Source of the DNA: Malacoraja senta | Taxonomy: Eukaryota | Length of the DNA stretch: 64,000 nucleotides | Direction of reading: 5' to 3' | Assembly: GCA_038087875.1 (NCBI GenBank) | Contig: CM075978.1 | Location: 102,176,001 to 102,240,000 of the forward strand | Shown here: positions 6,062 through 41,503 of the stretch, piece by piece | Position numbering within the stretch: position 1 is the first letter of the stretch | Layout of the letters: each line of letters starts with the position of its first letter | Notes under the pieces: model-generated | Told to the model about the DNA's origin: nothing | The model's input: the letters and a program-made list of their open reading frames with translations, nothing else | The model's database searches: none | Program-made: the position numbers and the translations under genes

Positions 6062-6070
6062 TCCTTTGTT

Positions 6071-6212: not shown

Positions 6213-7263
6213 GACTAGTTAATGATAGCATCCATTGGTTGGCCTTTTTCTTCAAGAACATTGTTGAGGAACTTGCTTAAGCGATAAATAAATTATTGAA
6301 ACAAAGGCTGAATACTGTGGATCCTGAAGTTTGACATAAAAATAGAATCTGCTAAAAACACTGAGCAGGTCAGGCAGCATTTGTGCAGAAGGGAAGATCC
6401 AGTTCAACCAAAATCTCACCAACACAAAATGTTAACTATTGCTGCCTGATCTGCTGTGTAAGTTCAACATGTTCTGTTTTTATTTCAGAGATCTAGCATC
6501 TGCAATCTTTTGCTTTTTAATTTACATTTCAGCTTGATGACCTATCAATAGAAGTGATTAAATGTTTTCATAAAAGATTACCAATCTAAAATGTAAATTC
6601 TGCTTGTTGTTCTGTACAAAATGTTCCTAGTAAGTATTGCTGGCACATTTTATTTTTTGTATTTAGGCCTAGATAAGTATCACCAATCAAATCATTTCAA
6701 TCAATCAAAATAAACCTGTGATAAAATGTATAGGAACCATCTACACATAAACTCTGATCTTGTGCTCTTCCCGTTTGCATGGACTTTCTATTTGCGCAAA
6801 AACGGTACATGATAGCGCTACGATTTTGCACCACCTTACTCACCATTCCCCTGTGCTGCAAGTGCAACAAGTTTTGTTCCGATCGATGGTATATTTTAAA
6901 AAGTTATTAAGCTTTAAAAATCTTTAAAACCGCGCATGCGCAGATTGGTTTCTTCTCCTGTCAGTCAGCGCCATGCAGATTGGTCTCCTCTCCTGACAGT
7001 CAATGCCACAGCCGGGGTGACGACGCCCCTTCCTGCACCACGGCCTCTCCTGCCTCACTCACAAACTCCTCTCACCCCTCCTCACAGTAACCTGTCTACC
7101 GTCTCCCCCACCACCGGCGGCGGGGGTTCAGTGGAGGCCTGTCTCTTCCTCACTCACCTCTCTCCCCCGCCCGCCCTCTGCGGCAATAGCGGTCCCGTCT
7201 ACCCATCTCCAGGGTGAATGGCTGTGATCATCCGTCTCCTCCTCCGCCACTGCGGTAACTCAC

Positions 7264-7341
7264 CCTCAAGGCCCTCTCGGAGATCTTCTCCACCAGCTCG
7301 TCGAAACTCATGGTGCCCACCGTGATGAACACCAACTCCAT
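7264..7341 (-). pseudogene. ALG13: ALG13-like exon-1 fragment (MELVFITVGTMSFDELVEKISERALR) with GTGAGT donor, inside the Helitron
   Basis: Matches the ALG13 N-terminus (human MKCVFVTVGTTSFDDL...). ATG plus a phase-0 donor after 26 codons. I could not see ALG13 exon 2 in 1-7260. Confidence 0.75.
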
Positions 7342-7595
7342 CCCCCCCCCCCCCCCCGTGGACCGGCCCGGCAGCGGCAGCGAGCAGGCAGGCAGGTAGG
7401 TGGGTGGGCAGGGTGGGCAGGGTGGGGACGGGCCAAGCAGTAGCAGCGGGCGGGCGGGCAGGGTGGGGAAGGGCCGAGCGGTAGCAGCGGGCAGTCCAGC
7501 AGGAAAGGGATGGGGCCGAACGGCGGCTGAGCCGGAGTGGGCAGAGAGAGGGAGGGAGAGTCGGGTTACAGGGTGGCCGAGTAGTTTGCGCGGAT

Positions 7596-8030
7596 TTTTT
7601 TTATTTTTTATTTATTTATTTTTTTTTTTTATTTTTTTTTTATTTTTTTTTTTATTAGAAGTACATTACATTACAACCACATACATTAATACTCGTCATT
7701 TATATCTTCTTACAATTAATGTACTCCCTTTATTTATTTTTTTACACTAGAGAAAGAAAAGATTGAAAGAGAGAAGAAAGTGAAGGAAAAAGTGCAAGTG
7801 TAGAAAAGTGTAGAAAATGTAACAACAAAAAAGGACGAAGACCCTATAAGAGCGAAATTAAAAACAAAAAGAAAAAGAGTTAAGAAATAGGCCCTAAGAA
7901 AAGAAAAGAGAAAGAGAAAAAAGAGAAACAAATGTTTTTTTTTTTGAGCATCACGTAAATAGGACATACCAACTCTTCAACTATCATCCCCCCTTACCCG
8001 ACCTCAATTTTTTATTTTTTTTAAAGTACT
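7596..8030 (-). mobile_element. L1-like 3' end with poly(A), nested in Helitron 1
   Basis: Poly-T tract followed by tttattagaagta..., matching the L1 3' end near 21755. It runs into the gap. Confidence 0.55.
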
Positions 8031-8230
8031 NNNNNNNNNNNNNNNNNNNNNNNNNNNNNNNNNNNNNNNNNNNNNNNNNNNNNNNNNNNNNNNNNNNNNN
8101 NNNNNNNNNNNNNNNNNNNNNNNNNNNNNNNNNNNNNNNNNNNNNNNNNNNNNNNNNNNNNNNNNNNNNNNNNNNNNNNNNNNNNNNNNNNNNNNNNNNN
8201 NNNNNNNNNNNNNNNNNNNNNNNNNNNNNN
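8031..8230. other. Assembly gap (200 N)
   Basis: Run of N. Confidence 1.
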
Positions 8231-9063
8231 GGATAATGGGGGGGATAGGGGGAGGCGAGTGGGAGATAGAGGGATAGGATGGGGTAGGGAGGAGAGTGGA
8301 GTTATGGAGTGACTGGGAGGGGAAAGGAGAGGAATGGAGATTGAGGGAGGGATTGGGGGAGGAGAGGAGGAGAGAAGGAGAGGGGGAAGAAGAGGGAGGG
8401 TGAAGAGGAGGGGGAGGGAGTGCTGGGGGATGAGGGGAAATGAGCCGCACCTGCCCAGTTGGGGGCTATGCGTGAGTGGTGGAATATTGCGTTGGGGGAA
8501 TGGGTTGTGTTGGGGGAACGTGTGAGTGGTGGAATATTGCGTTGGAGGAGGCAGACCCAACGGGTCTGCGCTTTGTCTAGTTCCTATTAAAATCAAAGTT
8601 CATGAAGTGAGTAATGGTGTATCTCCAAATTATATAAAGATGTGTTAAAACAAGTATTTCAGAATTCAACAAAACTTCCCAGATATTACATTTTAAACTT
8701 TGTTATCTTAAAAAGTAGGTGTGGCCCTAATAATAGGTGTAATTACTATCACTGTATGTTTGATTCTTATGGAAGTTAATACATATCTATTACCTTGAAG
8801 AATGACAAAATTAATGAGTGTGTCCAATCCTTAACAAAACTAGCATAAAATTAGAAATCTATTTTTATCCTAATGTCGTAGTTTGGAAGTGGTGCTATTG
8901 AAGCCATGAAAAACTATAAAAAAGTCAGAATAAACATAAAAACAAATGTTTGAAATGTAGCCTTTTCCTACACCATTCCTCCTTTCTTCAGCTTTTAAAT
9001 TGGATTTGGCAATGGTGACAACCTATTGCTAAATATCTATTTATATCTATCTATCTATATCTA

Positions 9064-12000
9064 TCTATATTATATTAAAACTCTGTGGCTGCCATCCGTT
9101 TGACTTGTGTCTGCCATCAAATCCCCTTTGATACCGCCCTAGGCCCACACAGCACGCGGAAACGCCGATTTTTTTAACCATTTCTAAAGAGATTACATTT
9201 ATCTTTACGAATAGACACTCCTGATTAAATTTGGTTGTTTTTATGTACACTTTTTAAAATAAAATACTTCTCCCCCCCCCCAAACATTTCAAAATGTTTT
9301 AAAAAAACAGCTCAGCCATAGAATGTTAGTAAAGATTCCGTTGTGTGATGTCACAATGCCCAATGCTCACAGATGTCCAATCGGAATGGATCCATTTACA
9401 TATGCCTTTGCGGCAGCCCCAGCCCCAGCCCCTCCCCCCAACCCCACAGCCTGTGTCGAAGGGCGTCGTCACGTGTGTGGGGGTGATAGGGAATGGGGAC
9501 ATTTCAAAATGTTTACAAAACAGCTCTCAGCAATAGAATGTTAATGAAGGTTCCGTTTTGTGATGTCACAATGCCCAATGCTCACAGATGACAAATCGGA
9601 ATGGATCCAATTACATATGCCTTTGCAGCAGCCCCAGCCCCTCCCCCCCACCCCCGCAGCCTGTGTCCAAGGGCGTCGTCACATGTGTGGAAATAGAGAA
9701 AGAGGATTGGGGGTGATAGGGAATGGGGAACAGATGGACTGTCCCTACCCCTCCTACTTCCACTCTCCCTCCTCTCTCCTCTCCCCTCCCACACCCTCTC
9801 TTCCCCCTCCACCACCCCTCTTCACCCCCATCTTCCCCCCACCCCCTTCCCATCTCTCTTGCACCACTCCCCGCTACCCCTCTGCCCCTCACTCCCCACT
9901 CTTCCCCTCTCCCTCCCCCACCTGTCTCCCTCCACCCTCCCTCTCTTCCCCCTACTCCTCTCCCCTTCCCCTCATCCCCTCCCCACTCTCCCCCCTTCCT
10001 GCCCTCCCCGCTCTCCTACCACTCCCCACTCACATCCCCCTACCCCCTCCCCACCCTGCTCTCTTCTCCCTCACCAATCTCTCCCCTTTCCTCCTCCCCC
10101 TCTCCCCTCCCTCCCCCCTCTCCTCTTCTCTCCCCACCCCATCTCCCTCTCCCCTCTTCTCTCCCCACCCCGTCTTCCTCTCCCCCGCCTGTGTTTGGGG
10201 GGTGGTTAGTGCGAGTGTGATGCCGCAGCACCCCCCCCCTCAAACGCGCGTTGGGGAAACAGCCCGCCAACAGTCTCTCTGTCTTTAAGACGGAACTGCA
10301 GATGCTGGAAAATCAAAGGTACACAAAAAAAACCTGTATAACCTCAGAGGGTGCAGCAGCATCTATGGATCAAAGGAAATAGGCAACGTTTCGGGACAAA
10401 ACCCGTCTGAGGATGGGTTTCGGCCAAAAGAGTTGCCTATTTCCGTCGCTCCATAGATGCTGCTGCACCCGCTGTGTTTCTCCAGCTCTTTTTGTGTGTA
10501 CCAGTCTCTCTGTCTCTCCCCTCTCTCTCTCTCTCTCTCTGCCCTTCTCTCTTCACAGCCCGCGGATCGAATCATGCACGCCCGCTCCAACAATGGTTTT
10601 TTTTTCTAACATAAAATTTTCTCTCTCTGCCCCCCCACCCTCGAGATGCACCTGAGAGGTGAGGGCTATTCGTCAGTGGATAGGGTGGAGATGGGATAAA
10701 AGAAGAAAATTAAAATATTAAGATAATATCAAGGGGTGTGATGAGTGTGTATGTTTGTTGGCGCCAGATTCACACCCCGCAACCATGCTTTGGAGGTACA
10801 GACCCAACGGGTGGGTGGTTAGTGTGATGCCGCAGCCCCACACCCCCCCCGCAAACGCACATTGGGGAGACAGACCCAATGGGTCTGCACTTGGTATACT
10901 TTCAAATCTGTGTGTCTGTGTGTGGGTGTACGGCATTTTGCCTTTGAAACGTATCTCCTCGAAAATCAGATGCAAAAATGCGGAGATTTTTACAATTTCG
11001 GTAGGGATTTAACATGAGTTCAGAAATCCACTCCTTGGTCAATTATTTCCCCAGATTTTGAATAAAATTGTTCACAAAACTCAAATTTTAAAATATAAAT
11101 GCGGCTCACCAGCTGCTGACGTCACAATGCCCACATGCCAACCAATCCAGGCCCACCTGCGTCCTGGCCCCGCCCCCCGCCGCTGTGGATTAAAGGCGCA
11201 GAATTATCGAGAAAGTTCTGCAGAACAAAGATTCTACAGTTGCGTTCCGCTATAGCTTCTTTGGTCTACAGATCTCGGGGCAGCGATTCCTCATTCGCTT
11301 AAAAATCTCCTCATAAGTTCCGCTGAACTTTCTCCTCACAGCCGGAGCAGCTTGCGCGCCCCTCCTATCCCCTGCGTGCTCATTCCAGCTGTGGGTTTTC
11401 AGAGAGTCAGAAGCCGGTGCTTCTTTGCTATGAACGCTCGCTACCGGGCAAACGCGTCTTGCCTTAGCGGCTTTAAAGGGCTGTTGTCAGCTGGCAGTTA
11501 TCAATGGCTGCGGGCGTCGCGAGGCCGAGTTACGTCAACACCCCCCCCCCTCTGATGCGCGCTGGCATTTGGCCCTCTGACTCCTCCCTGTTCTGTGTTC
11601 CTCTCTGTGAACGAGCAAGTTCTGCAGATCCGGAGGACAGGCGAGATCCTGGGGAGGTGAAGAGGGGGGATTGAGGGAGAGGAGGGAGTAGGGAGGGAGA
11701 GGGGGGAATGGGGGAGGTGAGGAGGGAGAGTGTGGAAATAGAGGGAGAGGAGTGGGGGGTGATAGGGAGTGGGGAATAGATGGACTCCCTCCCCCCCTCC
11801 ATCCCCACTCTTCCCCCTCTCTCCCCCTCCCTCCCCACTTCCCCCTCTCTCACCTACCCCATCTCCCCCTCCCTCCCCACTCTTCCCCCTCTCTCCCCTT
11901 CCCCCTCTTTCCCCTTACCCCTCTCCCCTCCCCTCCACACTCTTCCCCCTCTCTCCCCTACCCCATCTCCCTCCTGCCCTCCCTCCACCCCTCCCCTACC

Positions 12001-12500
12001 CCCTTCCCTCCACCCCATCCCCTCTCCACCCTCCCTCCCCCTCCCCCTCCCTTCCCCCCCACCTCTCCCCCTCCCCTTCCCTCCCCCCCTCTCAGTCCCC
12101 CTCTCTCCCTCTCTCTCCCCCTCTCTCTCCTCCCCTCTCTCTCTCCTCCCATCTCTCACCCCTCCTCCCCCACCCTCCCTCTCCACCCCTCCACCACCTC
12201 TCTGACTGTCCCTTGCCCTTCTGACTCTGCCCCTTTCTCTCTCTCTCCCCATTCTCTCTCTGCTCTCACTCTCTAGCCCCCCCCCATCCCTCTCTAGATG
12301 CGCCTGCGAGTTGGGGGCTATGCGTCAGTGGATAGGGCGGTTATGGGGTAAAAGGAGCAAATTAATAATATTAATATAATATCAAGGGGGGTAGTTAGCG
12401 TGTGTGCGGGGGGGGGAGTTAGTGTGTGTGACGCCGCATGCCGCCAGCCCCCCCCCCCCCACCTGCAACCACACGTTGGGGGAACAGACCCAACGGGTTC
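9064..12500 (+). mobile_element. Composite or tandem Helitron-like array with several 3' ends
   Basis: 5' TCTATATTATATTAAAACTCT after a (TCTA)n run. Repeated 3' modules GTTGGGGGA..CAGACCCAA(C/T)GGGT lie at about 10250, 10800, 10870 and 12485. Internal duplication of about 220 bp (9283-9700) and polypyrimidine tracts. Confidence 0.65.
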
Positions 12501-13734
12501 TATCTTAAGATTCCCTGGCAGTAACACACACAGGTTGGGGGGGGGGTTCCCCCCGCCACGGGTACCATGTAATCCCGTGCTACCTGCTCCATGGTCGGAT
12601 AGTCAGCGACTAAACCGTCTCCCCCACCTGGTTTGTCAGGTGAGGAAGAGGCTGTGGACACCCACCAGGACCAAAAACAAGAGCTGTCAAAGGGCGGATG
12701 AGCTTTTAGCAAGCCAATGGCCAATCGCACTTCAGTAGAAGTTGCGATCACTGAAGTACATAGCATTGTAAGGAATGATGATAAAGCACACACACCAAAA
12801 TCCTATAATACCAGCGGCGGAGGTCCGCAGGAACTGGACGACAGAGATGTGTGGTGCGTCCGTCACCATTCCCTTTGGAAAGCAGCACCACTGCGTCGTT
12901 AATGTTGAATGAAATGAACACACACAAGAAAATCTCTCTGAAGTTACTAGAGTCCATGACATAGTTAAATAACAGCCTTTTGACTGAATCTTCTTTTTTA
13001 TCAATTAGTCTAACAGTGGGAAATATTTTGTTAAGAGGAAAGAAAAAGAACCACAGTGTGCATGTCCTACTTTTCCACATTTACCCTCTTACCCTCCCCC
13101 AGTGGGATTAACAAGGGAATTATAAAAATCCGGATTACAGTTAGCATACTTGGATGTGCTTGTTACAGTGAACAAGTTCAGGTTGACAGACAACAGGATT
13201 ACTCCAGCAATGTTCCGAGTAATGATGAATTCAATCACTTTAAATATTCCAGTGTTTAAGTTGATCATCTCGTGCTCCGTTTAAATTAAACATCAGCGAT
13301 GACCTACTTTGAATGTGATTAACTTCACAGGAACAGTTTACAAGAGTAGGTGAGTTCAAGTAATTCTAAAACAAAAAATATTTTCTAACTGAGTTTAAAA
13401 ATAAGCTGGTCATGATTCCTTCAATTTATAAATTTCAATTTCTAACACTTCCTTGAAAGACCCTAGGATTTTAAATGTGTTATTCTTTATGTTGGATGTA
13501 GTTGAATTACAGTTAAATTTAGGGTGACAGCAGGCAGGTGTATTATAGAATAATCACTCTCCACATAATTCTGTCTGAAAAGTATTAAAACAATACCTCT
13601 GCAGGGATGCTAGGCAACTAAATTATTTTGCTCTTTGGTTTCCCAAAGAATATGATATTTGTACACTTGTTGTAATTTCAACAGTTATTATTCTAATGGG
13701 AAACCGATAATACCAAAAGCTGGTCGTTCATTGG

Positions 13735-24724: not shown

Positions 24725-26422
24725 TAGACAAAAGTGCTGGAGAAACTCAGCGGGTGCGGCAGCATCCATGGAGCGAAGGAAATAGGCAACGTTTCGGGCC
24801 AAAACCCTTCTTCAGACTGATGTAGGGTGGGAGGGGGGCGGGAAGAAGAAAGGAAGAGGAGGAGCCAGAGGGCTGAGGGAGAGCTGGGAAGGGAAGGAGA
24901 CAATAAGGGCTACCGGAAATTGGAGAAGTCAATGTTCATGCCGCTGGGGTGCAGACTGCCCAAGCGGAATATGAGGTGCTGCTCCTCCAGTTTCCGGTGG
25001 TGCTCACTATGGCCATGGAGGTGGCCCAGGACAAAAAAGTTGGATTTGGAATGGGAGGGGGAGTTGAAGTGCTGAGCCACTGGGAGATCAGATTGGTTAT
25101 TGCGGACCGAGCGGAGGTGTTCGGCGAACCAATGTAGACCAGCTGACATCTAGAGCAGCGGATGCAATAGATGAGGTTGGCGGAGGTGCAGGTGAACCTC
25201 TGTCGAACCTGGAACGACTGCTTGGGTCCTTGAATGGAATCGAGGGGGGAGGTAAATCGACAAGTGTAGCATCTCTTGCGGTTGCAAGGGAAAGTGCCCG
25301 GGGAGGAGGTGGTACGGGTGGGAAGGGAAGAATTGACCAGGGAGTTACGGAGGGAGCGGTCTTTGCGGAAAGCAGAGAGGGAGGGAGATGGGAAGATGTG
25401 GCGAGTGGTGGGGTCACGTTGGAGTTGGCGAAAATGACAGACTATTTGTTGTATGTGATGACTAGTAGGGTGGAAGGTGAGGACTAGGGGGACTCTGCCC
25501 TTGTTATGAGTGGGGTGATGGGGAGAGAGAGCAGTGTTGCGGAGTATGGAAGAGACCCTGGTGAGAGCCCCATCTATAGTAGGGGAGGGGAACCGCCGTT
25601 CCCTGAAGAATGAGGACATTTCTGATGCCCTGGTGTGGAACACCTCATCCTGGGAACAGATGCGGCGTAGACGGAGGAATTGGGAGTAGGGGATGGAGTC
25701 CTTACAGGAAGCAGGGTGCGAAGAAGTGTAGTTTAGATTGCCAAGGGAGTCAGTGGGTTTATAGTGGATGTCGGTCAGAAGTCTATCTGCGATGAAGATA
25801 GTGAGGTCAAGAAATGGTAGGGAAGTGTCGGAAATGGTCCAGGTGTATTTGAGTGCCGGATGGAAGTTAGTGGTGAAATGGATGAAGTCAGTGAGTTGTG
25901 TATGGGTGCAGGAGGTAGCACCAATGGAATCGTCGATGTAGCGGAGGTAGAGGTCGAGGATGGGGCCCTGGTACGTATTGAACAAGGATTGTTCGACGTA
26001 CCCTACAAAGAGGCAGGCATAGCTGGGGCCCATGCATGTGCCCATAGCTACGCCTTGTATTTGGAGGAAATGGGAGGAGTCAAACGAAAAGTTATTAAGG
26101 GTAAGGACCTAGGCGGAGGAGAGTATCTGTAGACGGGGATTGGTTGGTTCTCCGGTCGAGGAAGAAACGGAGGGCTTTGAGACTCTCCTGGTGGGGGATG
26201 GAGGTGTAGAGTGACTGGACATCCATGGTGAAGATGAGGGGATGGGGGCCTATAGAACGGAATTCCCGGAGATGACGGAGAGTGTCTGAGGTGTCTTGAC
26301 CATAGGTCGGGGGGGATTTAACCAGGGGGGATAGGATGGAGTCGAGGTGTGTGGAAATAAGTTTGGTAGGGCACAAACAGGCAGAGACAATAGGTCTACC
26401 AGGACAGTCAGGTTTGTGGATT
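24725..26422 (-). mobile_element. Penelope-like retroelement (RT plus GIY-YIG endonuclease), disrupted
   Basis: MDVQSLYTSIP, MGTCMGPSYA, YLRYIDD and NLIYCIRCSRCQLVYIG; terminal repeat with a hammerhead core. Confidence 0.92.
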
Positions 26423-26681
26423 TAATATTGCAACTTGCTCTGCTGCAATTTAATGGGGGCTTCTCTGAATAAGTCCCTAACTTGCAGCTGAACGAATCTG
26501 CAAATAATTTCAAGATATTTACTTATAGGCTCTCTTCTGAGCTTTAAGGGCCTCTCACGAGTCTGCGGTTATTGCCAGAGACCGCGGGCTCCGTCAAACG
26601 CACAATTCCGGGGCCGTGCGGCATTGTTCCCACGGTGCTAAAAAAAAACAACACTGTCCAAAAATATGTTCCTACCGGACA

Positions 26682-26942
26682 GCCGCCGCCAGTGAGGCAC
26701 GAGTGCGGCACGGTCACCGCCACAGCCGTCGCCAGTGAGGCACGAGCGCCGTGAGTCGAACCTGCACCGACACAGCCTCCGCCAGTGAGGCACATGTGCG
26801 GCACGGCCGCCGCCACCAGTGAGGTACGTGTGCGGCACGGCCGCCGCCACAGCCGCCGCCAGTGAGGTACGTGTGCGGCACGGCCGCCGCCACAGCCGCC
26901 GCCAGTGAGGCACGTGTGCGGCACGGCCGCCGCCACAGCCCC
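26682..26942 (+). repeat. GC-rich 43-bp minisatellite, about 6 copies
   Basis: AGTGAGG recurs at 26691, 26734, 26784, 26818, 26861 and 26904. Confidence 0.88.
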
Positions 26943-27935
26943 GCGATCCGAAAGACGTCATCAGCCAAAACCGCATGCTCGTTGAACCGGCCGTACTTGG
27001 CCCCCCGCGCAGCATCCGTGTGGTGCTCTTGTGGTTGCCGTGCGGTCACCTCTTCCGGCGACGCCGCGCTTCACCGCCAACGACCGCAAACCCGTGGGAC
27101 AGAGCCATTACCCTCCCATGGCTGTATTCAGCCAATGTAATCAAGTATCACTTACACCCCAGTTATTTCCTCTTCTCCCTGGTCCCAAAGATACAAAAGC
27201 TTCAAAGCACAAAAAACAGCTTCTTCCCTGATGTTATCAGACTATAGACTGGACTTCTCATCAGATAAGGATGAAGTTCTCCCTCTTGTAAACCATGCAC
27301 TTTTTCTGTAACGCTTTATTCTGCACTCTGTTTCCTTTCTCTTTGCCCTACCTGTTGTACTCATATACAGGGTTTTACTGTACTCATGTATGCTGTTCCT
27401 GGATTGCACGCAAACACATTTTTTACACTGTTTCTTGGTACATGTGACGATAATAAACCAATACCAATATCAATGTTACTGAATCCCTTGTCTCAAGTCC
27501 TGGCATTCACCGAGCTATTGACTCACCACTTATTACATCGTCCAACATCTATATTACTAAAAGTCTGATCTTGACCACTTCCTGTTGTGCTGTATATTGA
27601 TTTTAGAAAAAACGCTGCCACTTACGGCTGTGATTTTTGGCCATCTTACTCAGAGTCCCCCTCCGCTGTGCAGGACAAGAGGATTTTCCCCATCGATTAC
27701 AAATAAAAGAGTTATTAGTGTTTAAAAAATGTTGAGATTCTCTCTCCTGAAGGCCACACCCCTTCCAGAGGGACTATAAAACCCGGAAGTGTTGAGTGCC
27801 TCAGTCAGTCTCTGCAAGATGAGGGAAGCGAGAGGGTCACATCTCTCAGTCTGAGCTGTGAATAACACTGAACACATGTCTACTGAGTGTGGTTTTACTG
27901 ACCTTGAGTGCCCTTAATGTGGTTTGAAAATGAAA

Positions 27936-28082
27936 GTGGTTGGTTCGAAATAAAGCACAGCAAATGGTTGTTGGTGATGGTTGGTTCGAAATAAAGCACA
28001 GCAAATGGTTGTTGGTGGTGGTTGGTTCGAAATAAGGCACAGCAAATGGTTGTTGGTGGTGGTTGGTTTGAAATAAAACACA
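27936..28082 (+). repeat. 41-bp tandem repeat, about 3.5 copies, inside Helitron 3
   Basis: Unit ggttggttcgaaataaagcacagcaaatggttgttggtgat. Confidence 0.85.
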
Positions 28083-28486
28083 GGATTAAAAGTCTAAACT
28101 TGACAACTTCCTGTTTGCACTCTATATTGATTTTAGATAAAACACTACCACTTACGGCTGTGATTATTGGCCATCTTACTCAGTCCCCCTCCGCTTATCA
28201 GGTGCAGAGGATTCTTCCCATCAATGAAAAATAAAAGTGACATTAGTGTTTAAAAAATGTTGAGAATCTCTCTCCTGTCAATCACGCCATGAAGGCCACG
28301 CCCCTTCTGGTGGGAGGGGGGAGGGATTATAAAACCCAGAAGTGTGGGTGTGGCTCAGTCTCTGCAAGATGGGGAAGGGAGAGGTCACGACTCTGTCTGA
28401 GCTGTGAATCAACTGAACACACTGAATGCCCACTGAACTGTGAGTGTGGTGTTTATGTGGTGTTTTGTGTGGTTTTATGGTGATTT

Positions 28487-28935
28487 CACCCTGCTTGAAA
28501 TGGTATGAAACTGCATTTGAATGGGGTGGCCTTTCACCCTGCATGAAATGGTATGAAACTGCATTTGAATTTGGTGGCCTTGCACCCTGCATGAAATGGT
28601 ATGAAACTGCATTTGAATTTGGTAGCCCTGCACCCTGCATGAAGTGGTATGAAACTGCACTTGAATTCGGTGGCCTTGCACCCTGCTTGAAGTGGTCGGA
28701 AACTGCACTTGAATTCGGTGGCCTTGCACCCTGCTTGAAGTGGTAGGAAACTGCACTTGAATTCGGTGGCCTTGCACCCTGCTTGAAGTGGTAGGAAACT
28801 GCACCTGAATTTGGTGACCTTGCACCCTGCTTGAAGTGGTATGAAACTGCACTTGAATTTGATGGCCTTGCACCCTGCTTGAAGTGGTAAGAAACTGCAC
28901 TTGAATTTGGTGGCCTTGCACCCTGCTTGAAATGG
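28487..28935 (+). repeat. 48-bp minisatellite, about 9.3 copies, inside Helitron 3
   Basis: Unit caccctgcttgaagtggtaggaaactgcacttgaattcggtggccttg. It explains the 16-aa periodic ORFs. Confidence 0.92.
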
Positions 28936-31309
28936 AATTTCAAGGAATAGCCGTGAGTCATCTGCCAGCCCACCAGCCGTGAGTGAGCTGCCAGCACATC
29001 AGGCTTGAGTGACTGAGCTGCCACCCCAAGAATCCATCTGGCCCACAATGTGCATACTAGCCCTCTGGAAACCAGTACCTTCAGCCCACAACACCCATAC
29101 TAGCGCTCCAGAAAGCCTCCCCCCCCCACAGGCCACTAATATTGGAATTGGTGGAGAGGTGGAATATTGCGTTGGGGGACCAGCCCTCCCGTGTGAACAT
29201 GGGACCCCAACGGGTCCCACTTAGTCTAGTACCTCCTAGATCAAATTCACAATATGATCCCAAGTCTCTGATTACACATTCTCAATTCCCCCCTCCGTAT
29301 CACCAGCGTTCAATCACTCTTGGGTACATACATAAATAATATAGTAAGATTAGGATACATGGAGTGACACATCAAAGCACATCTGTCACTGTACTCCACA
29401 TTGAGTGCTGCAGGAGGAGCTCATTCTGTTGTGGTTTTGCAGCGCAATGCCTCTCCCTTTCTGCATTAGTCAACCCTGGAACAGGATGGAAGTCCCCGTT
29501 AACTTGAATTTAAATTAGATGGGGAAAGGTAAGTTTGGTTATTTAGAATTTAGATATTTACCTTATTTTCTTTTGTTATGTATTTCGTAGAGTGCATTGG
29601 TATTATTTTAATTAAATCAATATTATTATTTTTACTTCTTTATTGTTTAATTATTTTAACCAATTTTAATGGTTTTTAAATGCCCCTGAATATCAAAGAT
29701 GTTTTGGTGATTTGACAGGTTTTGTTAAAGATTGCACATTTAGCTTTGTCTCCAGTCAAGGGATGTTAGTGCATTCATTGGCTAACATTGCTGAATATGC
29801 CTGACTGAACAATTCCCTTTTGTGCAAGGTCAGTTTATTTACCCCTCTGCATTAGCAGGACTCATGTCTGCAGACAGGCGGGCAGACAAACAATGAGTGT
29901 TGTAAGGAATCAGTATGGACAGTGAGCAGTATTCATTTTCTCCTGTTTGCTAGTATTAGTTCCAGAAAATATTTTTCGGGAGCTTAATCAAGAGGAGCTT
30001 AAATATGAGAGCAACTGGCTAGAAATTAAAAACAAATTATAAAAGATTTTTCTTGGTAAACCAAAAGATTAGTGAGAGTAAATATAGGAGCTTTATCTGC
30101 AGAGATGTAAAATTGTAATGGGCAATAAATAACTGGCAGAGGCCTAATAAATAGTTTGCAGCATTCATCATATTTAAAGATACAATTTCAATTTCAGAGA
30201 TAATAGTAAACCAGGGTTCGAGATTTAGAAAATAAGGAATAAAAGATCTGCTTTGGTCGAAAAAGTGCTATAGAAATGAATAGTACTAAAAGCACATGAT
30301 CCTCTGGACCTTGAACCAGCAGAGGTTGCAACAGAGGCACTGAGTCTGAGCTTATAGAATTCTTCAGGTCATTTTCAGCTTTGTAAACTATGACTAGTAG
30401 GATATCAGAAGTTTATAGACCCAAAATTCTAGAATAACTCAGCAGGACAGGCAGCATCACTGGATAGAAGAAATGGGCGATGTTTCTGGTCGAGACCCTT
30501 CTTCAGACTGAGAGTCAGGGGAGAGGGAGTTACTGAGATATGCAAGTTAATAATTGCTGGAATCACTCAAGGATTAGTTCTGGGTCTCAGCTATATACAA
30601 TCTACCTACCAAATTGGATTTCATTTTTCATTTGTCACATTCTTACCATTGACTGGTCCATATAATTTCAGAACATTTTTATTTTTCTTCACAGTTTCCC
30701 ACCTCGCTTTGTAAAACTTGGTAATTATACTCAGCCATCTAGAACTTGTTCCAATCAATGCGATTTTGTGAAAATTCCCATTGTATTAGTGATGGTGCAT
30801 AATACTCTCCCATTAATGTGGTAGCCTGATGTTAAGAAAAAAAACATATAAATTAGATGTGATTTCAAATCTAACATTACATGTTTGGTTTGGGTAGTTT
30901 TTAAATTATTTTGTAGCTTAGTATATTATCTTTCTCTAATTAACTCTGTTGGATTGTATAATTCTTTTACATCGCATTTTGTTGTCAGTTGACCATTGTC
31001 TGATAGTATTATGCAATCCATGACTTCAGCTAATGATAATTGTCCCTCCAATGTTAACATGAACTAAAAAGGTTATTTTGCTTATGTTATAAGTAGCTTG
31101 TTGTTATTTCAAAGACATGGAGTTTGAGCAGCAACATTCCATTTGTATTATGATGGTATTGTCAATTTGTCAAAAGTCGAACTCCGACAGTAATTGATCT
31201 GACAAAGGCATGTATAGAAAAAAAATTATTCCGATCCCCAGAAAATTTATTAGAAAGGATAAATATTATGTTAGTATTCTTTGTATGTGTATGCATATAT
31301 ACAGTATAT

Positions 31310-31345
<36 letters not shown>

Positions 31346-31350
31346 CATGC

Positions 31351-32279: not shown

Positions 32280-34811
32280 GTAAGTCCTAAAATCTATTGG
32301 ATAAAGGACATGATGGATGATTAAAGAGAACCAAAGTATTTGGTAGCACTTTGCCTTATTTTGTGACTTGACTAGGTAAACAGAATGAACACGCAACAAC
32401 TAAACATAATTCATATTTGGCATCATTAAAATTTAAGTGGAGGCCAGATTTTCTGACCATTACATTTTTTGCCATCACTTCATCAGCTAATTCCTAACTT
32501 CATCACAATCCCTATCATATACTGCTTTGAAATTCCTAGAAGAAAACATTTCTTCTCGGATGTGATTGGGGTTTCTTGATGGTATGAAGAGAAGAGGTAA
32601 AAAGGTAGTTGCAGGATCTCTTGCAATTGAATGGGAAAGTGTTGTTAAAAAGGGAGTGGTTGGTGGGAAGGGAAGAATAAACCAGTGAATTGTGAAGGGA
32701 GCAGTTCAGTCAAAATGCTGAAAGAAGAAATGAGGGGAAGGTGTGATTGATAGCGAAGTGTTGTTGAAGCTGAGGATAATTGTGAAGGATGATCTATTGA
32801 GGCTGGTGAAAGGAAGCATAGTTGAAATAGCAGTGGGATTTATTATACGTCATCAAGTCTAATGTACTATATTCAGTGTTCATATTGTGGTGCCCATTTT
32901 ATTGGAAAAAGCAAACTCAAATTGGGTGACTGCTTTGTGCCAGCATTCAGTATAAAACAAGTATAAAACAGTATAAAACAAAACACCCATTTCACTAAAA
33001 GGCACAAAGTGCTGGAGTAACTCAGCGTGTCAGGCAGCATCTCTGGAGAGAAAAGGATAGGTAATGTTTTGCGTCGGAACCTTTCTTCAAACTGAAAGTA
33101 GTGGGTGGAGGGGTTGAAGAGCTGGAGGTGAGAAAAGACCAGGACTAATCAGGGATGATGACTAATTACCTCAGGCAGGATGAAGCCCTGGTAGGCCCAA
33201 TATTGGCTAGGGAAGGTGTGAACTCAAGAGGGGTACAATGTGGTGAACTGTGGAACTGGTTAAATGACTGGGGTGGAGGAATGGAGCAAAGTGGGAGGGG
33301 AGGGAGTGTTAGTAGAAGTTGTGTAAAATGAGAGAATTGAACATTCATTTTGCTGGGTAGTAGGCTACCCAAATAAAATATGAGGTGCCATTCCTGCAAT
33401 TTGCACGTGGCTTCACTCTGGCAATGGAGGAGGCCCAGGATACAAAGATCTGTCTGGGAATGGAAAGGGGGATTGAAATGGAGGCAATGGGGAGATCCCG
33501 TAGGCCTTGGCGGATGGGCATTTCACTGTTTGATGACCATCAACAATTTCAACCATTTCACTGTTTGATGTGGCAGCATATAAAGAGATGTACTCAATGT
33601 CTAATTCAGTTGTTCTCAAACTCTTTTGGCTGGCAGTCCCTGTTCAAAGAAATTGAAAATGCTATATAATATTCATAATTTAAAAGTGCTGCATCAAAAA
33701 AAGTTCTGTAAACATGCTCTTACAATGTTGGGGTTGAATATCACCTGATCACCTTAGAAGCTGTATCTTGCACTAAGTTTCCGAAACTTGGCCCTATGGA
33801 AGTCATAGGAAATGAATTTCAAATATGGGGTACGTATTGCTGCTCCTATCTTGCGAGTCTAGTAAAAGTGACTGAGCACAAACTTTCATTCCCATGCATT
33901 TACTCACAGATATTAGTGAGATGGACATGCCTGTGTTTGCAGTAGTCTATTCAATCTTATGTGGTATTCAACAACATTGTAATATGCCAGTAGCATTCAT
34001 ATTTAATACAATATTGATGTCAATTCAAAAAGTACTTTGTTGACTAAAATGCTTTGGGGCAATTTATTTTAAAAGTTCGATCCTTTTACTTCTTGAATGT
34101 ATCACACCTCTTAGCAGATCTCTATTTTAGTTAGATGAAATTCCCTTCATTCTCTTTCTTCGTGTCTAATGTTTTTATAGTGTAGGGAAAGGAAACTTTA
34201 TGTATCAAAGTATATTCACAATGTCTAGATATCAGTATAATATTAGTCAATAAATTACAGTGAAAGGCATGGATTGATCTATGGGATGGAGATATAGCTA
34301 TTACAGAAACATGGCTGAGGGAGCAACAGGACTGGTATCTCAATGTTCTCGGATATAAATGCTAGACGACAGAGCATTTTCACATAACAAGATATAAAGT
34401 GCTAGAGTAACAGCAGGTCATGCAACATTTCTGGAGAACGGATAGATGATGTTTTTGGCGGGGACTTTTCTTCAGACTCATTGCAGTGCGATTGAGGAGG
34501 GAAAAGAAGCTGGAAGTTAGGAGGGGTAGGACAAAGCCTGCCGAGTGATAGCTCGCCAAGCTTTGTCTTGTCTCTCCTCGTTCCAGTTTCCCCCCCCTCC
34601 CTCACCACAATCAGTCTGAATAAGGATCCCATCCCAAAATATTACCTATCCATTTTCTCCAGAGATGCTGCCTGAGCCGCTGAATTACTCCGGCACTTTG
34701 TGTTTTTTTATAACTAGCATCTGCAGTTCCTTGCATCGACACTCTATTAGTATTTTTTTCAAGTTGCTCATTTTCTTGCATTGAATGTTTTTCCTTTTAT
34801 ATTTTATTCAG

Positions 34812-34917
34812 ACTTGCAAACAAACAGGATAAAGCTGAGGCCCTACCAGAGTTTGGCATTATTGAACAGATGTCCCTGGGGAAACTGGCTAATGAAAATA
34901 AATCCTTCTGCCATCTT
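34812..34917 (+). CDS. ARL13A: ARL13A coding exon 4, G4 motif (LANKQDKAEALPEFGIIEQMSLGKLANENKSFCHL)
   Basis: attcAG acceptor and GTAAGT donor; 106 nt; NKQD guanine-specificity motif. Confidence 0.93.
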
Positions 34918-35641
34918 GTAAGTTTCATACAGTTATTGCATCATTGAGGAACTACTCACTTTTTTAAAATCATCTTTCACACTCCATTAGTACCCTCTCT
35001 AAAAGAATAATGCTGGATATATTTATCTGTGCCTCTCCAATTCAATAAATGAGGGGCAATGCGTCTATCAAGAGTACAAAGGACACTCATATTTAGGTCG
35101 CGGGCCAATGTTTTGACGTAGACCTGACAGAAAATAGGAATGCTGCTACTGACCTGCAAGGTTTAAGTGTTGGTACATTCTGGCTCCATTCAACTGCATT
35201 GAACGACCCATTTGTATGGGTTCCTGTGGCAGATCCTCTCACTTCTTTTTTTTCTTCGGGTACCCTGGTACTGAAATTCTAACTGATCCTGTTATGTGTA
35301 CATTACGAACCCCATTGCAAAGTACCTGAAAATGTAGATGATAGGAAGGATCTCCTCTGCTGCTGAAGCACACCATTCAATTGTTATTCTGCGGTTCACA
35401 GGTAACTGGATCAACAGGGCAGACAGGGACCTAGCTTCAATCAAGATATGCAGTCAAGGGATAAGAAGGGTAGGTGGGGCGAGAGGTTAACAAGCTTATA
35501 ATTGGCAGGACTCCTGTGAACATTCACAACAGAGATTTCAGCGAATTAGCGCATTTTCTGTTTGAAGCTAACTTTATCTGCATAGTGTGAAAATCCTGAA
35601 GGAAATTGGGACAGGAATATAGGGAACTGTAAATGACCTGT

Positions 35642-36585
35642 GGTACACAAAAATGCTGGAGAAACTCAGCGGGTGCAGCAGCATCTATGGAGCGAAGGAA
35701 ATAGGTAACGTTTCGGGCCGAAACCCTTCTTCAGACTGATAGGGGGTGGGGAGAAGAAAGGAAAAAAGGAAAAAGGCGGAGGAGGAGCCCAAGGGCTGGG
35801 GGAGGGGAGGAGACAACCAGATGGCTGATGAAGGGGAGGGGACAGCCAGGGCTAGCAGAATTGGGAGAATTCAACGTTCAGGCCACCAGGATGTAGACTG
35901 CCCAAGCGGAATATGAGGTGCATTTCCTCCAATTTACGGTGTTGCTCGCTGTGGCCATGGAGGAGACCCAGGACAGAGAGGTCAGATACGGAATGGGAGG
36001 GGGAGTTGAAGTGCTGAGCCACCGGGAGTTCAGGTTGGTTATTGCGGACCGACCGGAGGTGTTCGGCGAAACGATCGCCAAGCCTCCGCTTGGTCTCACC
36101 GATGTAGATCAGCTGGCATCTAGAGCAGCGAATGCAATAGATGAGGTTGGAGGAGATGCAGGTGAACCTCTGTCGCACCTGGAACGACTGCTTGGGTCCT
36201 TGAATGGAGTGGAGGGGGGAAGTGAAGGGACAAGTGTTGCATCTCTTGCGGTTGCAAGGGAAAGTACCAGGGGAGGGGGTGGTATGGGAGGGAAGGGAAG
36301 AATTGACAAGGGAGTTACGGAGGGAGCGGTCTTTGCGGAAGGCAGACATAGGGGGAGATGGGAAGATGTGGCGAGTGGTGGGGTCACGTTGGAGGTGGCG
36401 AAACTGGCGGAGGATCACTTGTTGTATGTGACGGCTGGTGGGGTGAAAGGTGAGGACTAGGGGGACTCTGCCTTTGTTGTGAGTGGGGGGATGGGGAGAG
36501 AGAGCAGTGTTGCGGGGTATGGCAGAGACCCTGGTGCGAGCCTCATCTATGGTGGAGGAGGGGAACCCCCGTTCCCTGAAGAATG
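35642..36585 (-). mobile_element. Penelope-like element 3' portion with an intact GIY-YIG domain
   Basis: NLIYCIRCSRCQLIYIGETKRRLGDRFAEHLRSV...GLN; terminal repeat at 35642-35740. Confidence 0.92.
35703..35737 (-). ncRNA. Minimal type-I hammerhead ribozyme motif in the Penelope terminal repeat
   Basis: AGU-CUGAAGA-A-GGGUUUCGGCCC-GAAAC-GUU-ACCU: the conserved core, stem II and a palindromic stem III. Confidence 0.6.
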
Positions 36586-38484
36586 TAATGGGTGCATTAT
36601 TGTATCCTGCAGCTTTGCTCCCTTGTTATTGATGAATGGAGACCTCAAGATTGTTCACTCTTCTACATTTATTAAGTGAGAATACTGTGGCATTACAGAC
36701 TGGCAGGAGTTTTTAATTATTAGCATTAAATACATGCCAGCAGCTAAATACAAGTACGTCATGAGTTGTACATTTTGAAAGACATTTGGTTCGTTTAACA
36801 GCTCATCGACCTCAATAATAGATATCTGTATTACCGTTGGCTTCAGTACCTTGATCATCAAACATGATAGCTACGAAAAGCATGGAGAGTGATTTTCTGC
36901 AAGGTTCCCCTGAAAGGCCATCACACCTGGAATTGATTAGCATGCAGAATTGAAGAACACGATTAAAAGTTTTTCTAGACTTTCCACAGTTTATCTTGCC
37001 AGCCATCCTAAACTGTCCCAGCATTTCCAGGTATTAAAAATTAACTACTAGGGTTGGTGTGAGTAATGCAACAGAAAAATCATTGGTGCCAGTAAAAAAT
37101 ATTTTTATGAAAGATCTATTTGAAAATTTCTGCCCAATAATTGTAGAAATGTAGATTATATGAAGTAGAAGTAATTTGACCACATGTATCCATATTTAAA
37201 TTACATCTCATTCTTTCCATTATTATCTATGATGAAGTGTGAACTGAGTACACATTAAAGAATCGTGGGTTAATATTGAAAACGCAAGAGATTACAGATG
37301 CTGGAATCTTGATTTTTTTTTAAAGTGCTGGAAGATCTCAGCGAGTCAGGCAGTGGAGCGATTCTGTGGATGGAAATGGATGGGCGATGTTTTGGGTCGG
37401 GTTCCTTCATCAGATTAATGGAGTAGAGGGGAGAAAGGTGGTATAGAGAAGTGAAGGAAAGTGGTGGCGCAAAATCTGGCAAGTGATAAGCAATTGAGGT
37501 GACAAGCGGTGATTGGCAAATGGGTGTATATAGTAACTAAGGCTGGAGGTGAAATGGAGTCGATGGGCTGCAGATGGAGAATCAGAGAAGAAAGTAAGAG
37601 GAGGTGTAAAATGGAAAACTGGAGTGTGGGGTAGTGGATGGCAGTTAATGGGGAGGGAGGAATAAAAAGAAAAAGGGGACATGAGTGGGGAAGAAGCAGA
37701 AAGGAATTGGGAAACGGGGGTCATGGGAGAAAGGTATGCATACTAGGGGGGGGGGGATAAAAAGAAACCCAGGATAGATGAGAAAGTAGGAGTGAGGGAT
37801 GTGGTTTTAGAAATAGAATAATTTAATATTCATGCTGTTGGGTTGTAGGATACCCAAGGGAAATATAAGCTTTGTTCTTCCAGTTAACTGTTTTTACTCC
37901 CTGCATTTTGTTAATTTACTCATGGGTTAATATTGTTCATTTACCAGATTAACCAATGTATTTGGTCACCATTATATATACTTGAAAACTGGGAATACAA
38001 TAAGTTACAAAACCACCAATAAAGTATAAATGAGTGTGATGGGCCAAAGGGCCTATTTCTATGCAGTGTATCTCTAACCTCATGTGGGCCTTAAATAAAG
38101 ATGTCTCCCTAGGTAAAGTAATACATTTTTCACTTCAAAATGCCATTTCAACTACCCAATGCAATTAGTATGATGCAGATCTAATCAAAAAGAAATAAAA
38201 CCACCTTCAGAATGTAATAACATGAATAATTCATCAGGCACAGCCCCAACTTTGCAATGACATGATTTGTATGAAATGTATTTGATTGTCTTCTGCTCCT
38301 GGAACCATTTGAATTCAGTTGCATAATAGGGCTGGAAATGGTCCACATTCTCCTCATATGGAACAGGGAAGAGAGAGATACGGACCATGTGCCGACAGAT
38401 GGGATTAGTTTAATCTAGCATCATGGTTGGCATTGACATGGTGAGTTGAAGGACCAGCTCCTTTGCTGTACTGTTCTGTGTTCC

Positions 38485-39256
38485 TGTAAATTGCTCGTTC
38501 TAAGCATCCCCCCAGTCTAGTTTCAGTCAAAAACGACTGAATCAAGCACTTGATCAACTAATCTTTATTTTAACAAAACACAATTACAGTTCAACTACCG
38601 TACCTATCCCACTGCGGGTTCAAACCTCGTATCTGCCTGATCAAGCCCTCTAGGCCTCGCTCAAACAGAGACACTCCAGAAGGTCACGCAGTCCCAAGCA
38701 CTCTCCCAGAAGATCGACGCAGGACCTCATGGTAGCGGACCTTTATAGGTCCCTGGTCCTCGAGGGGCCGAACCACATGGGGGTGGTCTCTTTGCAATCG
38801 AATTACAGATATCGATTAACCCCATACATAACAGACATTTCCCTAACCCAATAATACAGCAGCTAATACATTGAATTCAAACAGGGCTTCTCAAGGAAGC
38901 AAACATAGCAACATTTACCCTGATCTGCAAGAAAACCAGACAAGGCTCAATACTGCATCCAATCAACATTCGGCAAAGTGAAACACTGCAACATTATTTA
39001 CAATTATTTACAAGGTGTATGTCTGGTTTGCCGTCATTCAATCCATTCCATGCATTTTGCACATAATTGACAGGGTCTGCAGATGTTCTTATTCTTTTCC
39101 TGCAGCTTGGATCTAGGCTCTAGACAAACTGGCACCACTCTGCAGCTTGTCCCAGTCCCACAGAGAGCACTTTCAAATTGACCAAATCTCCCAGCAGCCC
39201 AGAAGCTTTTACCCCATTTTAGAGTCCTAGCCCCTCCAATCTGGCCAGGATTAACA
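38485..39256 (-). mobile_element. Solo LTR (772 bp), ERV- or Gypsy-type
   Basis: TG...CA termini and 4-bp TSD TTCC. TATAAA (near 38741) and AATAAA (near 38565) lie on the minus strand. Confidence 0.85.
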
Positions 39257-40214
39257 TTCCAAGGTTGCACAGGGAGACTCAATAGTGGAGTGGTACTGCA
39301 GGCCATTTGTGTTTGTAGCTATCTTCAGTGAGGAATTAGCAGATTCTGAAAATAAATCAATTCACAGTAATAATGAAGGGTGGGTGGGTCTAAATAATGA
39401 GAAGACAGAGTTTAACTCAAAATAATGAAGATAACAAATTGGAGGTCATTTTTAAAGACAAAAGTTACAACTTACCGGTAATATGGTATTCTTTTCTCCT
39501 CAATTTCACGGTGTTGCCATTTTTTGTGATTGATATTATGGCCCCACCCACGACTCAGCCATCCTTTTGTAAGATGGACTCACCTCAGCCCTCAAACTCA
39601 CATTGGACAATTATAGAGTCATAGAGTTATACAGTGTAAAATAGGCCCTTTGGGCCACCAAGATTGGTGTTGACCATCATGTTTCTCTATACTAATCCTA
39701 TTTACCTGCAATAATTCCATATCCACCTATGCTTTCCTCATTCAGATGCTTTTTAAATGTTGTACTGCTATTCCTCTGGTAATTCAGTCCAGATACCATC
39801 TACTTTTTGTGAAAAATGTGCTCTTCAGATACCCTTTAACACTTCTGCTCCTGAAAAGGGACTCTTGACTATCTACCTTATCATAATTTTATACATCTCA
39901 AACATATTGCCTCAGACTACTTTGCTCTAGGGAAAATAGAGTCTCAGCCTGTTTAATCTCATTTTATAACTCATGAGGCAACATCATTTTAGGACTCATG
40001 AGCTAACCAGGCAACATCCTTCTACATTGTTCTGCATCTCCTCTAGCTTAATCACATAATTCCTGTAGTGTGCTAATTAGAACTTACCAATGTTTTGTAC
40101 AACTGTAAAATGTAGTTTTAACTGTTGTGTTCAATACCTCAGCTGACGATAATAAGCTTGCCAAATGCCTTCTTCATTATTTTTCCTACCTATGTTGCCA
40201 CTTTTAGGGAACTA

Positions 40215-41503
40215 CCAGACTAAGTGGGACCCATTGGGTCTCAGGTTCACATGGGAGAGCTGGTCCCCCAACGCAATATTCCACCTCTCCACCAATTCCA
40301 ATATTGGTGGCTAGTTGGGGGGGGAGGGGGGTTCTGGAGCACTAGCATGGGTGTTGTGGGTCAAGTCAAGTCAAGCACAGTGAGTGCATAGCCAACAATC
40401 CATTTTAATCCATTTCATGTCAAGTCAATCCATTTCAAGTCAAGTCAAGTCAAGCACAGGGCAGGTGGGGCCAGCCAACAATACAACCCATTTGCTTTAA
40501 TTTCAGGTGAGGTCAAGCAAAGCAAAGGCAAAGCAAAAGCAAAAGCACGGGGCAGGCAGGGCCAGCCAACAATACAATCCATTTGCTTTCATTTCAGGTG
40601 AGGTCAAGCAAAGCAAAGGCAAAGCAAAAGCACAGGGCAGGCCAGACAACTCATTGCATTTCATTAAGGGCTAACAAATAATTTATTGCAAGCACATTAA
40701 GGGTTAACAAATCATCATTCATTGCAAGCACTGCTGGCTAACAAATCATTTATTACAAGCACATTAAGGGTTAACAAATGATCATTCATTGCAAGCACAT
40801 TACTGGCTAACAAATCATTTATTGAAAGCACATTAAGGGTTAACAAATCATCATTAATTGCAAGCACATTGTTGGCTAACAAATCATTTATTGCAGGCAC
40901 ATTAAGGGTTAATAAATCATTCATTGCAAGCACATTGCTGGCTAACAAATCATTTATTGCAAGCACATTAAGGGTTAACAAATCATCATTCATTGCAAGC
41001 ACATTGCTGGCTAACAAATCATTTATTGCAAGCACATTAAGGGTTAACAAATCATCATTCATTGCAAGCACATTGCTGGCTAACAAATCATTTATTGCAA
41101 GCACATGAAGGGTTAACCACATAAAGCACATAAAGGGTAGATTCACAGTTCAGTAGACTCACATCAGAATCAGAGTTGTGGCCTCTCCCTCGCGATCTTC
41201 CAGAGTGACTGACTCATGTCCAGGCATCTGGGGTGTTATAGTCCTGCCCCCCCCCCCGGAAGGGGTGTTACCTTCATCATGTTGATTGACAGGTGAAAGG
41301 ATCAATCAGTTGATCTCAAGATTTTTTTAACATTCATAACTTTTTTAATTTTCATCGATCGGAAAAATCCTCAGGGCTGCCTCAGCGGAGGAGGACTGTG
41401 AGTAAGATGGCCAAAATCATAGCGATATATGGTAGCGTTTTTTCTAAAATCAATATACAGCGCAGACAGGAAGTGGTCAAGATGAGACTTTTAGCTATAT
41501 AGA
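40215..41503 (-). mobile_element. Non-autonomous Helitron-like element 4 (complete termini), inserted in a CR1 fragment
   Basis: Minus strand: A|TCTATATAGCTAAAAGTCTCATCTTGACCACTTCCTGT ... GAGACCCAATGGGTCCCACTTAGTCTGG|T (CTRR end). Confidence 0.85.
40655..41120 (+). repeat. Higher-order minisatellite (about 69-bp dimer of two related 33-36-bp units) inside Helitron 4
   Basis: Alternating ttgcaagcacattaagggttaacaaatcatcatt and ttgcaagcacattgctggctaacaaatcattt units. Confidence 0.88.

Follow-up and report, generated by a model that had tools for sequence, protein, structure and literature searches.

Probable canonical Helitrons with common termini and separately amplified interiors, one of them carrying an ALG13-like exon, in the skate Malacoraja senta

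Here we analyzed a window of 64,000 nucleotides from the skate Malacoraja senta (C2:102176001-102240000 of a 1.94-Gb assembly of 6182 contigs, which is the assembly that all the genome scans below refer to) containing four loci, A to D, that had been predicted from the sequence alone to form one Helitron family with a common head, a common 3' module and exchangeable cargo. Our results indicate with high confidence that the four loci belong to the canonical Helitrons, a group of rolling-circle DNA transposons. The assignment is made because the elements begin with TC, end in CTRR behind a hairpin, lie between a host A and a host T without duplication of the target, lack terminal inverted repeats and have an autonomous partner encoding a Rep/helicase (RepHel) protein, so that every defining feature of Helitrons that could be tested was found in this family. 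Each locus is a separate multi-copy subfamily amplifying its own conserved interior, and the proposal of freely interchangeable cargo consequently needs to be narrowed: the interiors do differ between loci, but what we see are four subfamilies, each with a conserved interior, and not one-off captures.

The presence of common ends was evident from motif counts in the window, where GACCCAAYGGGTC, with up to one mismatch, occurred seven times against the 0.08 expected and GCGTTGGRG five times against the 0.23 expected, values that are far above chance and that agree with the claim of a head and a 3' module common to the four loci. Reading the ends from the window sequence, element A runs from TCTACACATAAACTCTG, preceded by a flanking a, through the hairpin to GTCTAG, followed by a flanking t; element C runs from TCTATATTACTAAAAGTCTG to GTCTAG between the same two flanking bases, and element D, on the minus strand, from TCTATATAGCTAAAAGTCTC to GTCTGG, again between a and t. 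All three begin with TCTA (TC after the flanking A), have CTAG or CTGG before the flanking T and show no target duplication around the element, and hence the three complete CTRR ends at A-T sites that had been proposed were read in the same way here. Outside the very ends, the amount of common sequence varied among the loci. The heads of C and D were 84% identical over 191 bp and their tails 88% identical over 148 bp, the head of A was 68% identical to that of C over approximately 174 bp, with A also having the 26-nt tail box and the hairpin, and the sequence common to B and the other loci comprised the first ~20 nt and the last ~38 nt only. A single degenerate 23-nt pattern designed for all four heads gave no matches at up to three mismatches; small insertions and deletions separate the heads. 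The idea of shared ends enclosing fully different interiors is right for the repeat units, which are not detectably related, and too strong for C and D, whose heads and tails are alike well beyond the termini. Locus B is a head-to-tail dimer with an ambiguous 5' edge. Scanning the whole window with Rfam at the gathering threshold gave no match, and the conserved heads are therefore not known RNA genes.

Examination of junctions elsewhere in the genome yielded the same boundaries. In the C family, the 5' flank ended in A in 17 of 18 copies and was then followed by TCTATATTACTAAAAGTCTG, with the copies starting with TCTAT in 17 cases and with TTTAT in one, while at the 3' side the end GTCTAG was followed by T in 18 of 18 copies, the flanks being unrelated on both sides. 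CTAG was followed by T in all eight A-family 3' junctions, and across 32 termini the 3' end was CTAG in 31 and CTGG in one. None of the 11 full-length copies (540-1682 bp) showed a target duplication, and no terminal inverted repeats were found, as the 5' end matched the reverse-complemented 3' end at only 8 of 30 positions. A (TCTA)n run was frequent at the 5' end of the A and B families. These junctions bear directly on a different explanation, according to which the loci are pieces of satellite or segmental duplication that carry a Helitron-like motif and were spread by unequal crossing-over. It is true that B-type units and autonomous copies form tandem arrays, that many of these are located on small unplaced contigs, that two such contigs have Rep matches at distances of 10-11 kb, and that certain tails come in pairs of equal score separated by 60-140 kb. 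However, thousands of copies are dispersed over all the large contigs, and their flanks are unrelated right up to TC and CTAG; the 18 and 18 junctions have no extended flanks in common, and two related species lack element C at the corresponding position (see below), making an origin by unequal crossing-over extremely improbable.

The tail hairpin of these Helitrons has a stem of 7-8 bp and a loop of 3-4 nt and ends 10-11 nt before the 3' end. Its stem is CAG-ACCC/GGGT-CTG in the lineage including A, B and the autonomous element and GGG-ACCC/GGGT-CCC in the lineage of C and D. Between the two versions there are two compensatory pair changes, an argument for selection on the hairpin structure. 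The hairpin of A reaches -8.8 kcal/mol (z = -3.0).

Searching the genome for the Helitron Rep domain (PF14214) gave 112 matches, with open frames of up to 1766 amino acids. One uninterrupted open reading frame (ORF) of 1727 amino acids on contig C4719 contained Helitron_like_N (PF14214, 4.5e-57), PIF1 (PF05970, 8e-69) and Pif1_2B (PF21530), together with the HUH motif (HFH), the motif YVIKY (YxxxY) 138 amino acids downstream of it and the Walker A motif GGTGKT, and no endonuclease domain was found in it by Pfam. The last 37-40 nt of this autonomous copy were 90-95% identical to the tails of A and B, and the AAAASTCTG head motif, the hairpin core and CTTRGTCTAG are common to the C and D subfamilies as well. 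The autonomous Rep/helicase partner with the same ends, which the original prediction had recommended looking for, is therefore present: it has the 1727-amino-acid frame, a 3' end like those of A and B and 1.1 kb of 5' sequence like that of B. This partner also helps to place the family with respect to Helentrons (Helitron2), the sister group of canonical Helitrons, which are characterized by short asymmetric terminal inverted repeats, by insertion between T and T and, in many members, by an encoded (AP-)endonuclease. In favor of such an affiliation, head-to-tail arrays and satellite-like internal repeats have been reported more frequently in Helitron2 than in Helitron1 (PMC12001565), and head-to-tail arrays are common in this skate genome. 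Nevertheless, the insertion here is between A and T and not between T and T, the termini are not inverted repeats, there is one 3' subterminal hairpin followed by CTAG, and Rep, Pif1 and Pif1_2B are the only domains in the frame, so that we regard it as very improbable that the loci are Helentrons.

Comparison of the 1727-amino-acid protein with other RepHel proteins gave 96% identity to a protein of the skate Leucoraja erinacea and 66% identity to one of another skate, Rhinoraja longicauda; both bear the annotation "uncharacterized protein" and have the same Pfam domains. The closest named RepHel from outside the skates among the hits was that of the freshwater snail Physella acuta (57% identity, full coverage), the RepHel of Anolis was only 37% identical, and no frog protein appeared among the 20 hits to the skate protein. 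These identities to snail and Anolis proteins are hints of an unusual lineage or of an old horizontal transfer.

To relate locus C to its empty site, contigs of four related organisms were aligned to positions 26900-29900, with a flank divergence of approximately 6-7% (estimated from mismatch counts). In two of the four species one contig spans from 27108 (or 27173) to 27548 and then continues from 29272 onward with 80 nt between the two segments, and this bridging means that the 1.68-kb element C is absent from that site in these two species. On its left side the empty site has an exact edge, the T shared at 27548 being the host T. Empty A-T sites in related species, which had been named as a check on the prediction, were thus obtained in part: element C is absent in two species with an exact left edge, and the right edge can be placed only within 42 nt. 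The depth of family sequence in all four species was approximately 1e5-1e6 compared to 20-40 for the flank, and breakpoints exactly at 27547 and after GTCTAG|T were seen in hundreds of their contigs. We also noticed that all four species align to the right flank of C only from 29272.

A number of observations weigh against reading the loci as canonical Helitrons. On its right side the empty site is unclean, with the 80 nt of the relatives corresponding to 42 nt in the window (29230-29271), a difference that could reflect an indel or a minor rearrangement beside the insertion. The D hairpin contains a mismatch and shows no folding advantage over shuffled sequence (z = +0.3), intact CTRR ends are absent from B1 and B2, no sequence bridges the assembly gap in A, and the 436 bp beside that gap are not family sequence. 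Current activity of the family is perhaps a possibility.

Regarding abundance, a pattern of 25-26 nt for the 3' terminus ending in GTCTAG had 5988 + 5696 = 11,684 exact matches in the genome, in comparison with none for the reversed control, which substantiates the claim of an abundant family. Because the exact pattern fits only one of the five termini of the window, the real number of copies probably exceeds this figure several-fold, by rough extrapolation. A same-strand neighbor within 3 kb was present for 18 of the first 100 listed termini. Candidate numbers for heads, tail, interiors and the ALG13 piece, here and below, come from first-look matching and are lower bounds. They amounted to at least 5837 for the A head (40 scored, 85-90% identical), at least 3265 for the C head (40 scored, 95-97% identical), at least 616 for the C tail and at least 1850 for the D interior (40 scored, 80-94% identical). 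Since the best C copies are 95-97% identical and the A copies 85-90%, C is the younger subfamily of the two. The coordinates of all these features are given in Table 1.

Table 1. Coordinates of the Helitrons and of the features within them, as positions in the 64-kb window
Feature	Positions	Strand	Basis or remark
Helitron A, non-autonomous, older subfamily, broken by assembly gap	6740..8580	+	TC after a, CTAG before t; paralogs
Captured ALG13 exon 1, antisense to element	7264..7341	-	ATG 7341-7339; GT splice donor 7263-7262; assignment by position of matching sequence
Copy-specific stretch of A adjoining gap, opens with poly-T run	7595..8030	.	Missing from 11 A-family paralogs
Assembly gap (N)	8031..8230	.	
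A 3' module: G-rich stretch, GGTGGAATATTGCGTTGG box twice, hairpin 8551-8569, CTAG 8577-8580	8231..8580	+	76-88% identity to paralogs
Helitron B1, deletion derivative of autonomous element	9036..10894	+	5' edge ambiguous 9026-9064 in (TCTA)n run
Palindromic repeat like a miniature inverted-repeat transposable element (MITE), unrelated to Helitrons, nested in B1	10318..10502	.	Other copies in window
Helitron B2, tandem with B1	10895..12499	+	3' end cut off inside hairpin
Helitron C, young subfamily	27548..29229	+	Paralogs; empty site in relatives
C head1	27548..27935		
C 41-bp array	27936..28083		
C head2	28085..28486		
C 48-bp array	28487..28935		
C tail	29085..29229		Hairpin 29200-29219
Helitron D, sister subfamily of C, 3' end CTGG	40215..41503	-	Head and tail identity to C
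D tail	40215..40360		
D 91-bp repeat, two copies	40452..40632		
D 69-bp higher-order array	40669..41117		
D head	41148..41503		

Locus A has host DNA as its cargo. The ALG13-like exon translates as MELVFITVGTMSFDELVEKISERALR and is followed by GTGAGT, and the paralogs of the A family translate as MESVFVTVGTTSFDELVEKISSERAVR and then continue into the intron. The peptide of the paralogs, including the first translated intron codons, was 91% identical to that encoded at C7:5532565-5532669, which lies 3.1 kb upstream, on the same strand, of two exons (C7:5535772 and C7:5539990) that match the ALG13 domain PF04101 at profile positions 32-81 and 80-120. From this match just upstream of the PF04101 exons, the fragment is a DNA-level copy of ALG13 exon 1 and the start of its intron, and contig C7 is where the parent ALG13 gene is located. 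Searches of the 27-amino-acid peptide against Pfam and a library of solved structures gave no match, the peptide being too short, and the ALG13 assignment is for this reason based on genomic position. At least 391 candidate copies of the piece were detected in the genome with the peptide as query and at least 491 with the surrounding 411 bp of DNA, and in many copies the piece lies ~110-140 bp downstream of the A head. The statement that the family carries host DNA consequently holds, with ALG13 exon 1 and intron start as the example.

In the case of the gap within A, the left part (1 to ~855) preceded the right part (1-350), with the orientation unchanged, in 11 A-family paralogs of 0.8-1.5 kb, and for this reason both sides of the gap fit one element. 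It is unlikely, in our opinion, that locus A is instead made of a head with the ALG13 piece and a separate A-family tail, brought together by scaffolding, nested insertion or rearrangement. Such an origin would agree with the copy-specific stretch adjoining the gap, which none of the 11 paralogs has, and with the copy in the window being longer than any of them. On the other side, the orientation, the order and the family on both sides of the gap are those of a single copy, and the extra sequence is equally well accounted for by a nested insertion that begins with the poly-T run. That stretch, which elsewhere in the genome matches by its T-run only, may be such a nested insertion within a single Helitron A. 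Upstream of Helitron A there is, in addition, a 46-bp repeat of 3.1 copies (98% matches) at 6070-6212.

Locus B is related to the autonomous element itself. The window sequence 9125-10331 aligned to positions 70-1091 of the autonomous copy with 79-91% identity, and 10862-10898 aligned to its last 37 nt with 94.6% identity, and since the 1.1 kb of 5' sequence and the 3' end are shared, B is an internal-deletion derivative of this copy. Tandem junctions at the autonomous copies consist of a tail directly followed by T and a head, CTAG being continued by T(CTA)n..TTATATAAAACTCTG, and the junction between B1 and B2 aligns to these tail-head junctions with the 5 bp GTCTA missing. B has no CTRR because GTCTA was lost at this tail-to-head junction with the second unit. 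The C-rich and pre-tail parts are common to B2 and B1, with 73-81% identity.

Some further observations concern the tandem organization around the autonomous element. Five copies (L048 with L054 on C4719, L047 with L053 on C3619, L050 with L056, L051 with L057, and L052 with L058) are autonomous Helitrons within arrays of their own short derivatives, and in each of these five the same C-rich sequence, starting ATGGACTGTCCC, comes after the tail that lies behind the ORF. A second tail occurs ~1.06 kb after the first in three of the five copies, namely those with readable spacing. Mixed tandem junctions, in which T and an A-type head come after a tail of the B/autonomous type (…CACTTGGTCTAG), were found at L041:1462-1530 and L043:1780-1846, and these could be a source of new combinations of heads and tails. 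The 5' region of B and of the autonomous element contains a promoter-like block of ~195 bp in duplicate (9284-9480 and 9499-9690; TGATGTCACAATGCCCAATG.., with CCAAT-like and GC-rich boxes), which may be the RepHel promoter, and B2 has a block related to it at 11100-11200. The palindromic repeat nested in B1 is apparently flanked by repeated cagtctctctgtct, and further copies of this ~180-bp repeat lie at 5967-6047, 24730-24817, 35642-35736 and 43210-43295.

The interiors of C and D contain minisatellites. Inside element C a second head, with 78% identity to the first, lies at 28087, and the C arrays in the window comprise 3.6 copies of the 41-bp unit and 9.4 copies of the 48-bp unit. This double-head architecture (first head, 41-bp array, second head, 48-bp array, tail) recurs in most of the paralogs examined, with copy numbers ranging between 2.7 and 11.6 for the 41-bp unit and between 2.6 and 12.1 for the 48-bp unit. 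In D, the 69-bp array has 6.6 copies and is composed of 33-bp sub-units, and alignments of the D interior across the genome begin in steps of ~68 bp, indicating D arrays of differing length. The 41-, 48- and 69-bp arrays that had been described are hence all real, with the two copies of the 91-bp repeat in D as an addition, and the copy number of the minisatellites differs between copies of the family. A possible kinship of the D 91-bp unit with the C 41-bp unit was rejected (local alignment score of 22 against a best shuffle of 22), and the scores of the other pairs of C and D repeat units were within the shuffle range as well. Just upstream of Helitron C lies a GC-rich 43-bp minisatellite of 6.3 copies (26679-26944). 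Elsewhere in the window, a non-long-terminal-repeat retrotransposon at 50232-52894 (+) has a 659-amino-acid ORF with an endonuclease (PF14529, 1.1e-10) and a reverse transcriptase (PF00078, 6.9e-28), followed by an ORF of 259 amino acids.

Placing these results into a model of transposition requires drawing, by analogy, on the work on Helraiser (PMC4778049, PMC5876387) for the enzymology, the origin of the arrays and the origin of the captures. In the Helraiser model the 3' hairpin is a terminator that can be bypassed, the intermediates are circular and captured promoters are spread (PMC4778049, PMC5876387). In such a scenario, RepHel supplied by autonomous copies elsewhere would recognize the ~20-nt 5' terminus (TCTA..AAAASTCTG) and the ~30-nt 3' terminus formed by the hairpin and the following nucleotides up to CTAG. 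It would nick at the 5' TC, its Pif1-type helicase would unwind one strand until the hairpin and CTRR impose a stop, and the strand would be inserted between a host A and a host T with the target left unduplicated. Any DNA between a working head and a working tail could then be mobilized, giving rise to distinct non-autonomous subfamilies that amplify their own interiors: an ALG13 promoter and exon 1 in A, a double head with 41- and 48-bp arrays in C, 91- and 69-bp arrays in D and an internally deleted autonomous element in B. Head-to-tail arrays might result from failed termination at the hairpin or from insertion beside an existing 3' end, and expansion and contraction of the internal minisatellites would lead to the length differences between copies.

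The family corresponds to textbook Helitrons, is ordinary in kind and comes from a host that has been little studied. To our knowledge, large Helitron amplifications are known in few vertebrate lineages, namely bats, some frogs, lizards and teleosts. With its more than 11,000 intact 3' ends, the family would provide an example from cartilaginous fish of promoter and first-exon shuffling and of the creation of variable repeats, and the open RepHel frame with all its catalytic motifs could be assayed without reconstruction, unlike the bat element. For genome annotation, the family accounts for a large number of minisatellites and of stray ALG13-like first exons and probably also for some of the unplaced contigs that are rich in repeats. 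We put forward only tentatively, as a possibility less probable than its negation, that this is a recent and perhaps active skate Helitron burst of bat-like scale (more than 10,000 copies, intact RepHel), in which copies of the ALG13 exon, with its start codon and splice donor, could start or splice into host transcripts, the elements would give rise to variable minisatellites, and the lineage may have been horizontally transferred. Our literature search retrieved no paper with both Helitron and ALG13 or with both Helitron and Leucoraja, returned for Helitron and skate only papers that by their titles deal with other topics, and found no description of this family or of a Helitron burst in cartilaginous fish.

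Among the systems already known, the nearest relatives of the autonomous copy, the RepHels of Leucoraja erinacea and Rhinoraja longicauda, are unnamed gene models that are not described as transposons. The terminal sequences of Helibat are presumably unrelated to those of the skate family. The likeness to Helibat and Helraiser of bats lies in the 5' TC, the 3' CTAG, the terminator hairpin and the insertion between A and T (PMC4224331, PMC4778049), in the large number of non-autonomous subfamilies that have nothing but the ends in common with a RepHel partner, and in the capture and mass amplification of promoters and first exons, of NUBPL in bats and of ALG13 in the skate. Capture of exons and promoters at scale is known in vespertilionid bats (PMC4224331), and the differences are the cartilaginous-fish host and the intact RepHel frames of the skate, whereas Helraiser had to be reconstructed. 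Heli1Xen1 and Heli2Xen of Xenopus are similar in having a vertebrate host, a capture biased toward 5' exons and minisatellites in non-autonomous copies, as well as arrays that flank an autonomous copy and tandem arrays derived from Helitrons, but in Xenopus there are few captures in few copies each, in contrast to the one exon in at least 391 candidate copies in the skate (PMC12001565). Maize Helitrons resemble the skate family in the shuffling of exons at the DNA level, intron sequence included. They usually carry pieces of several genes and have low copy numbers. The skate family, in contrast, amplifies single short captures to hundreds of copies.

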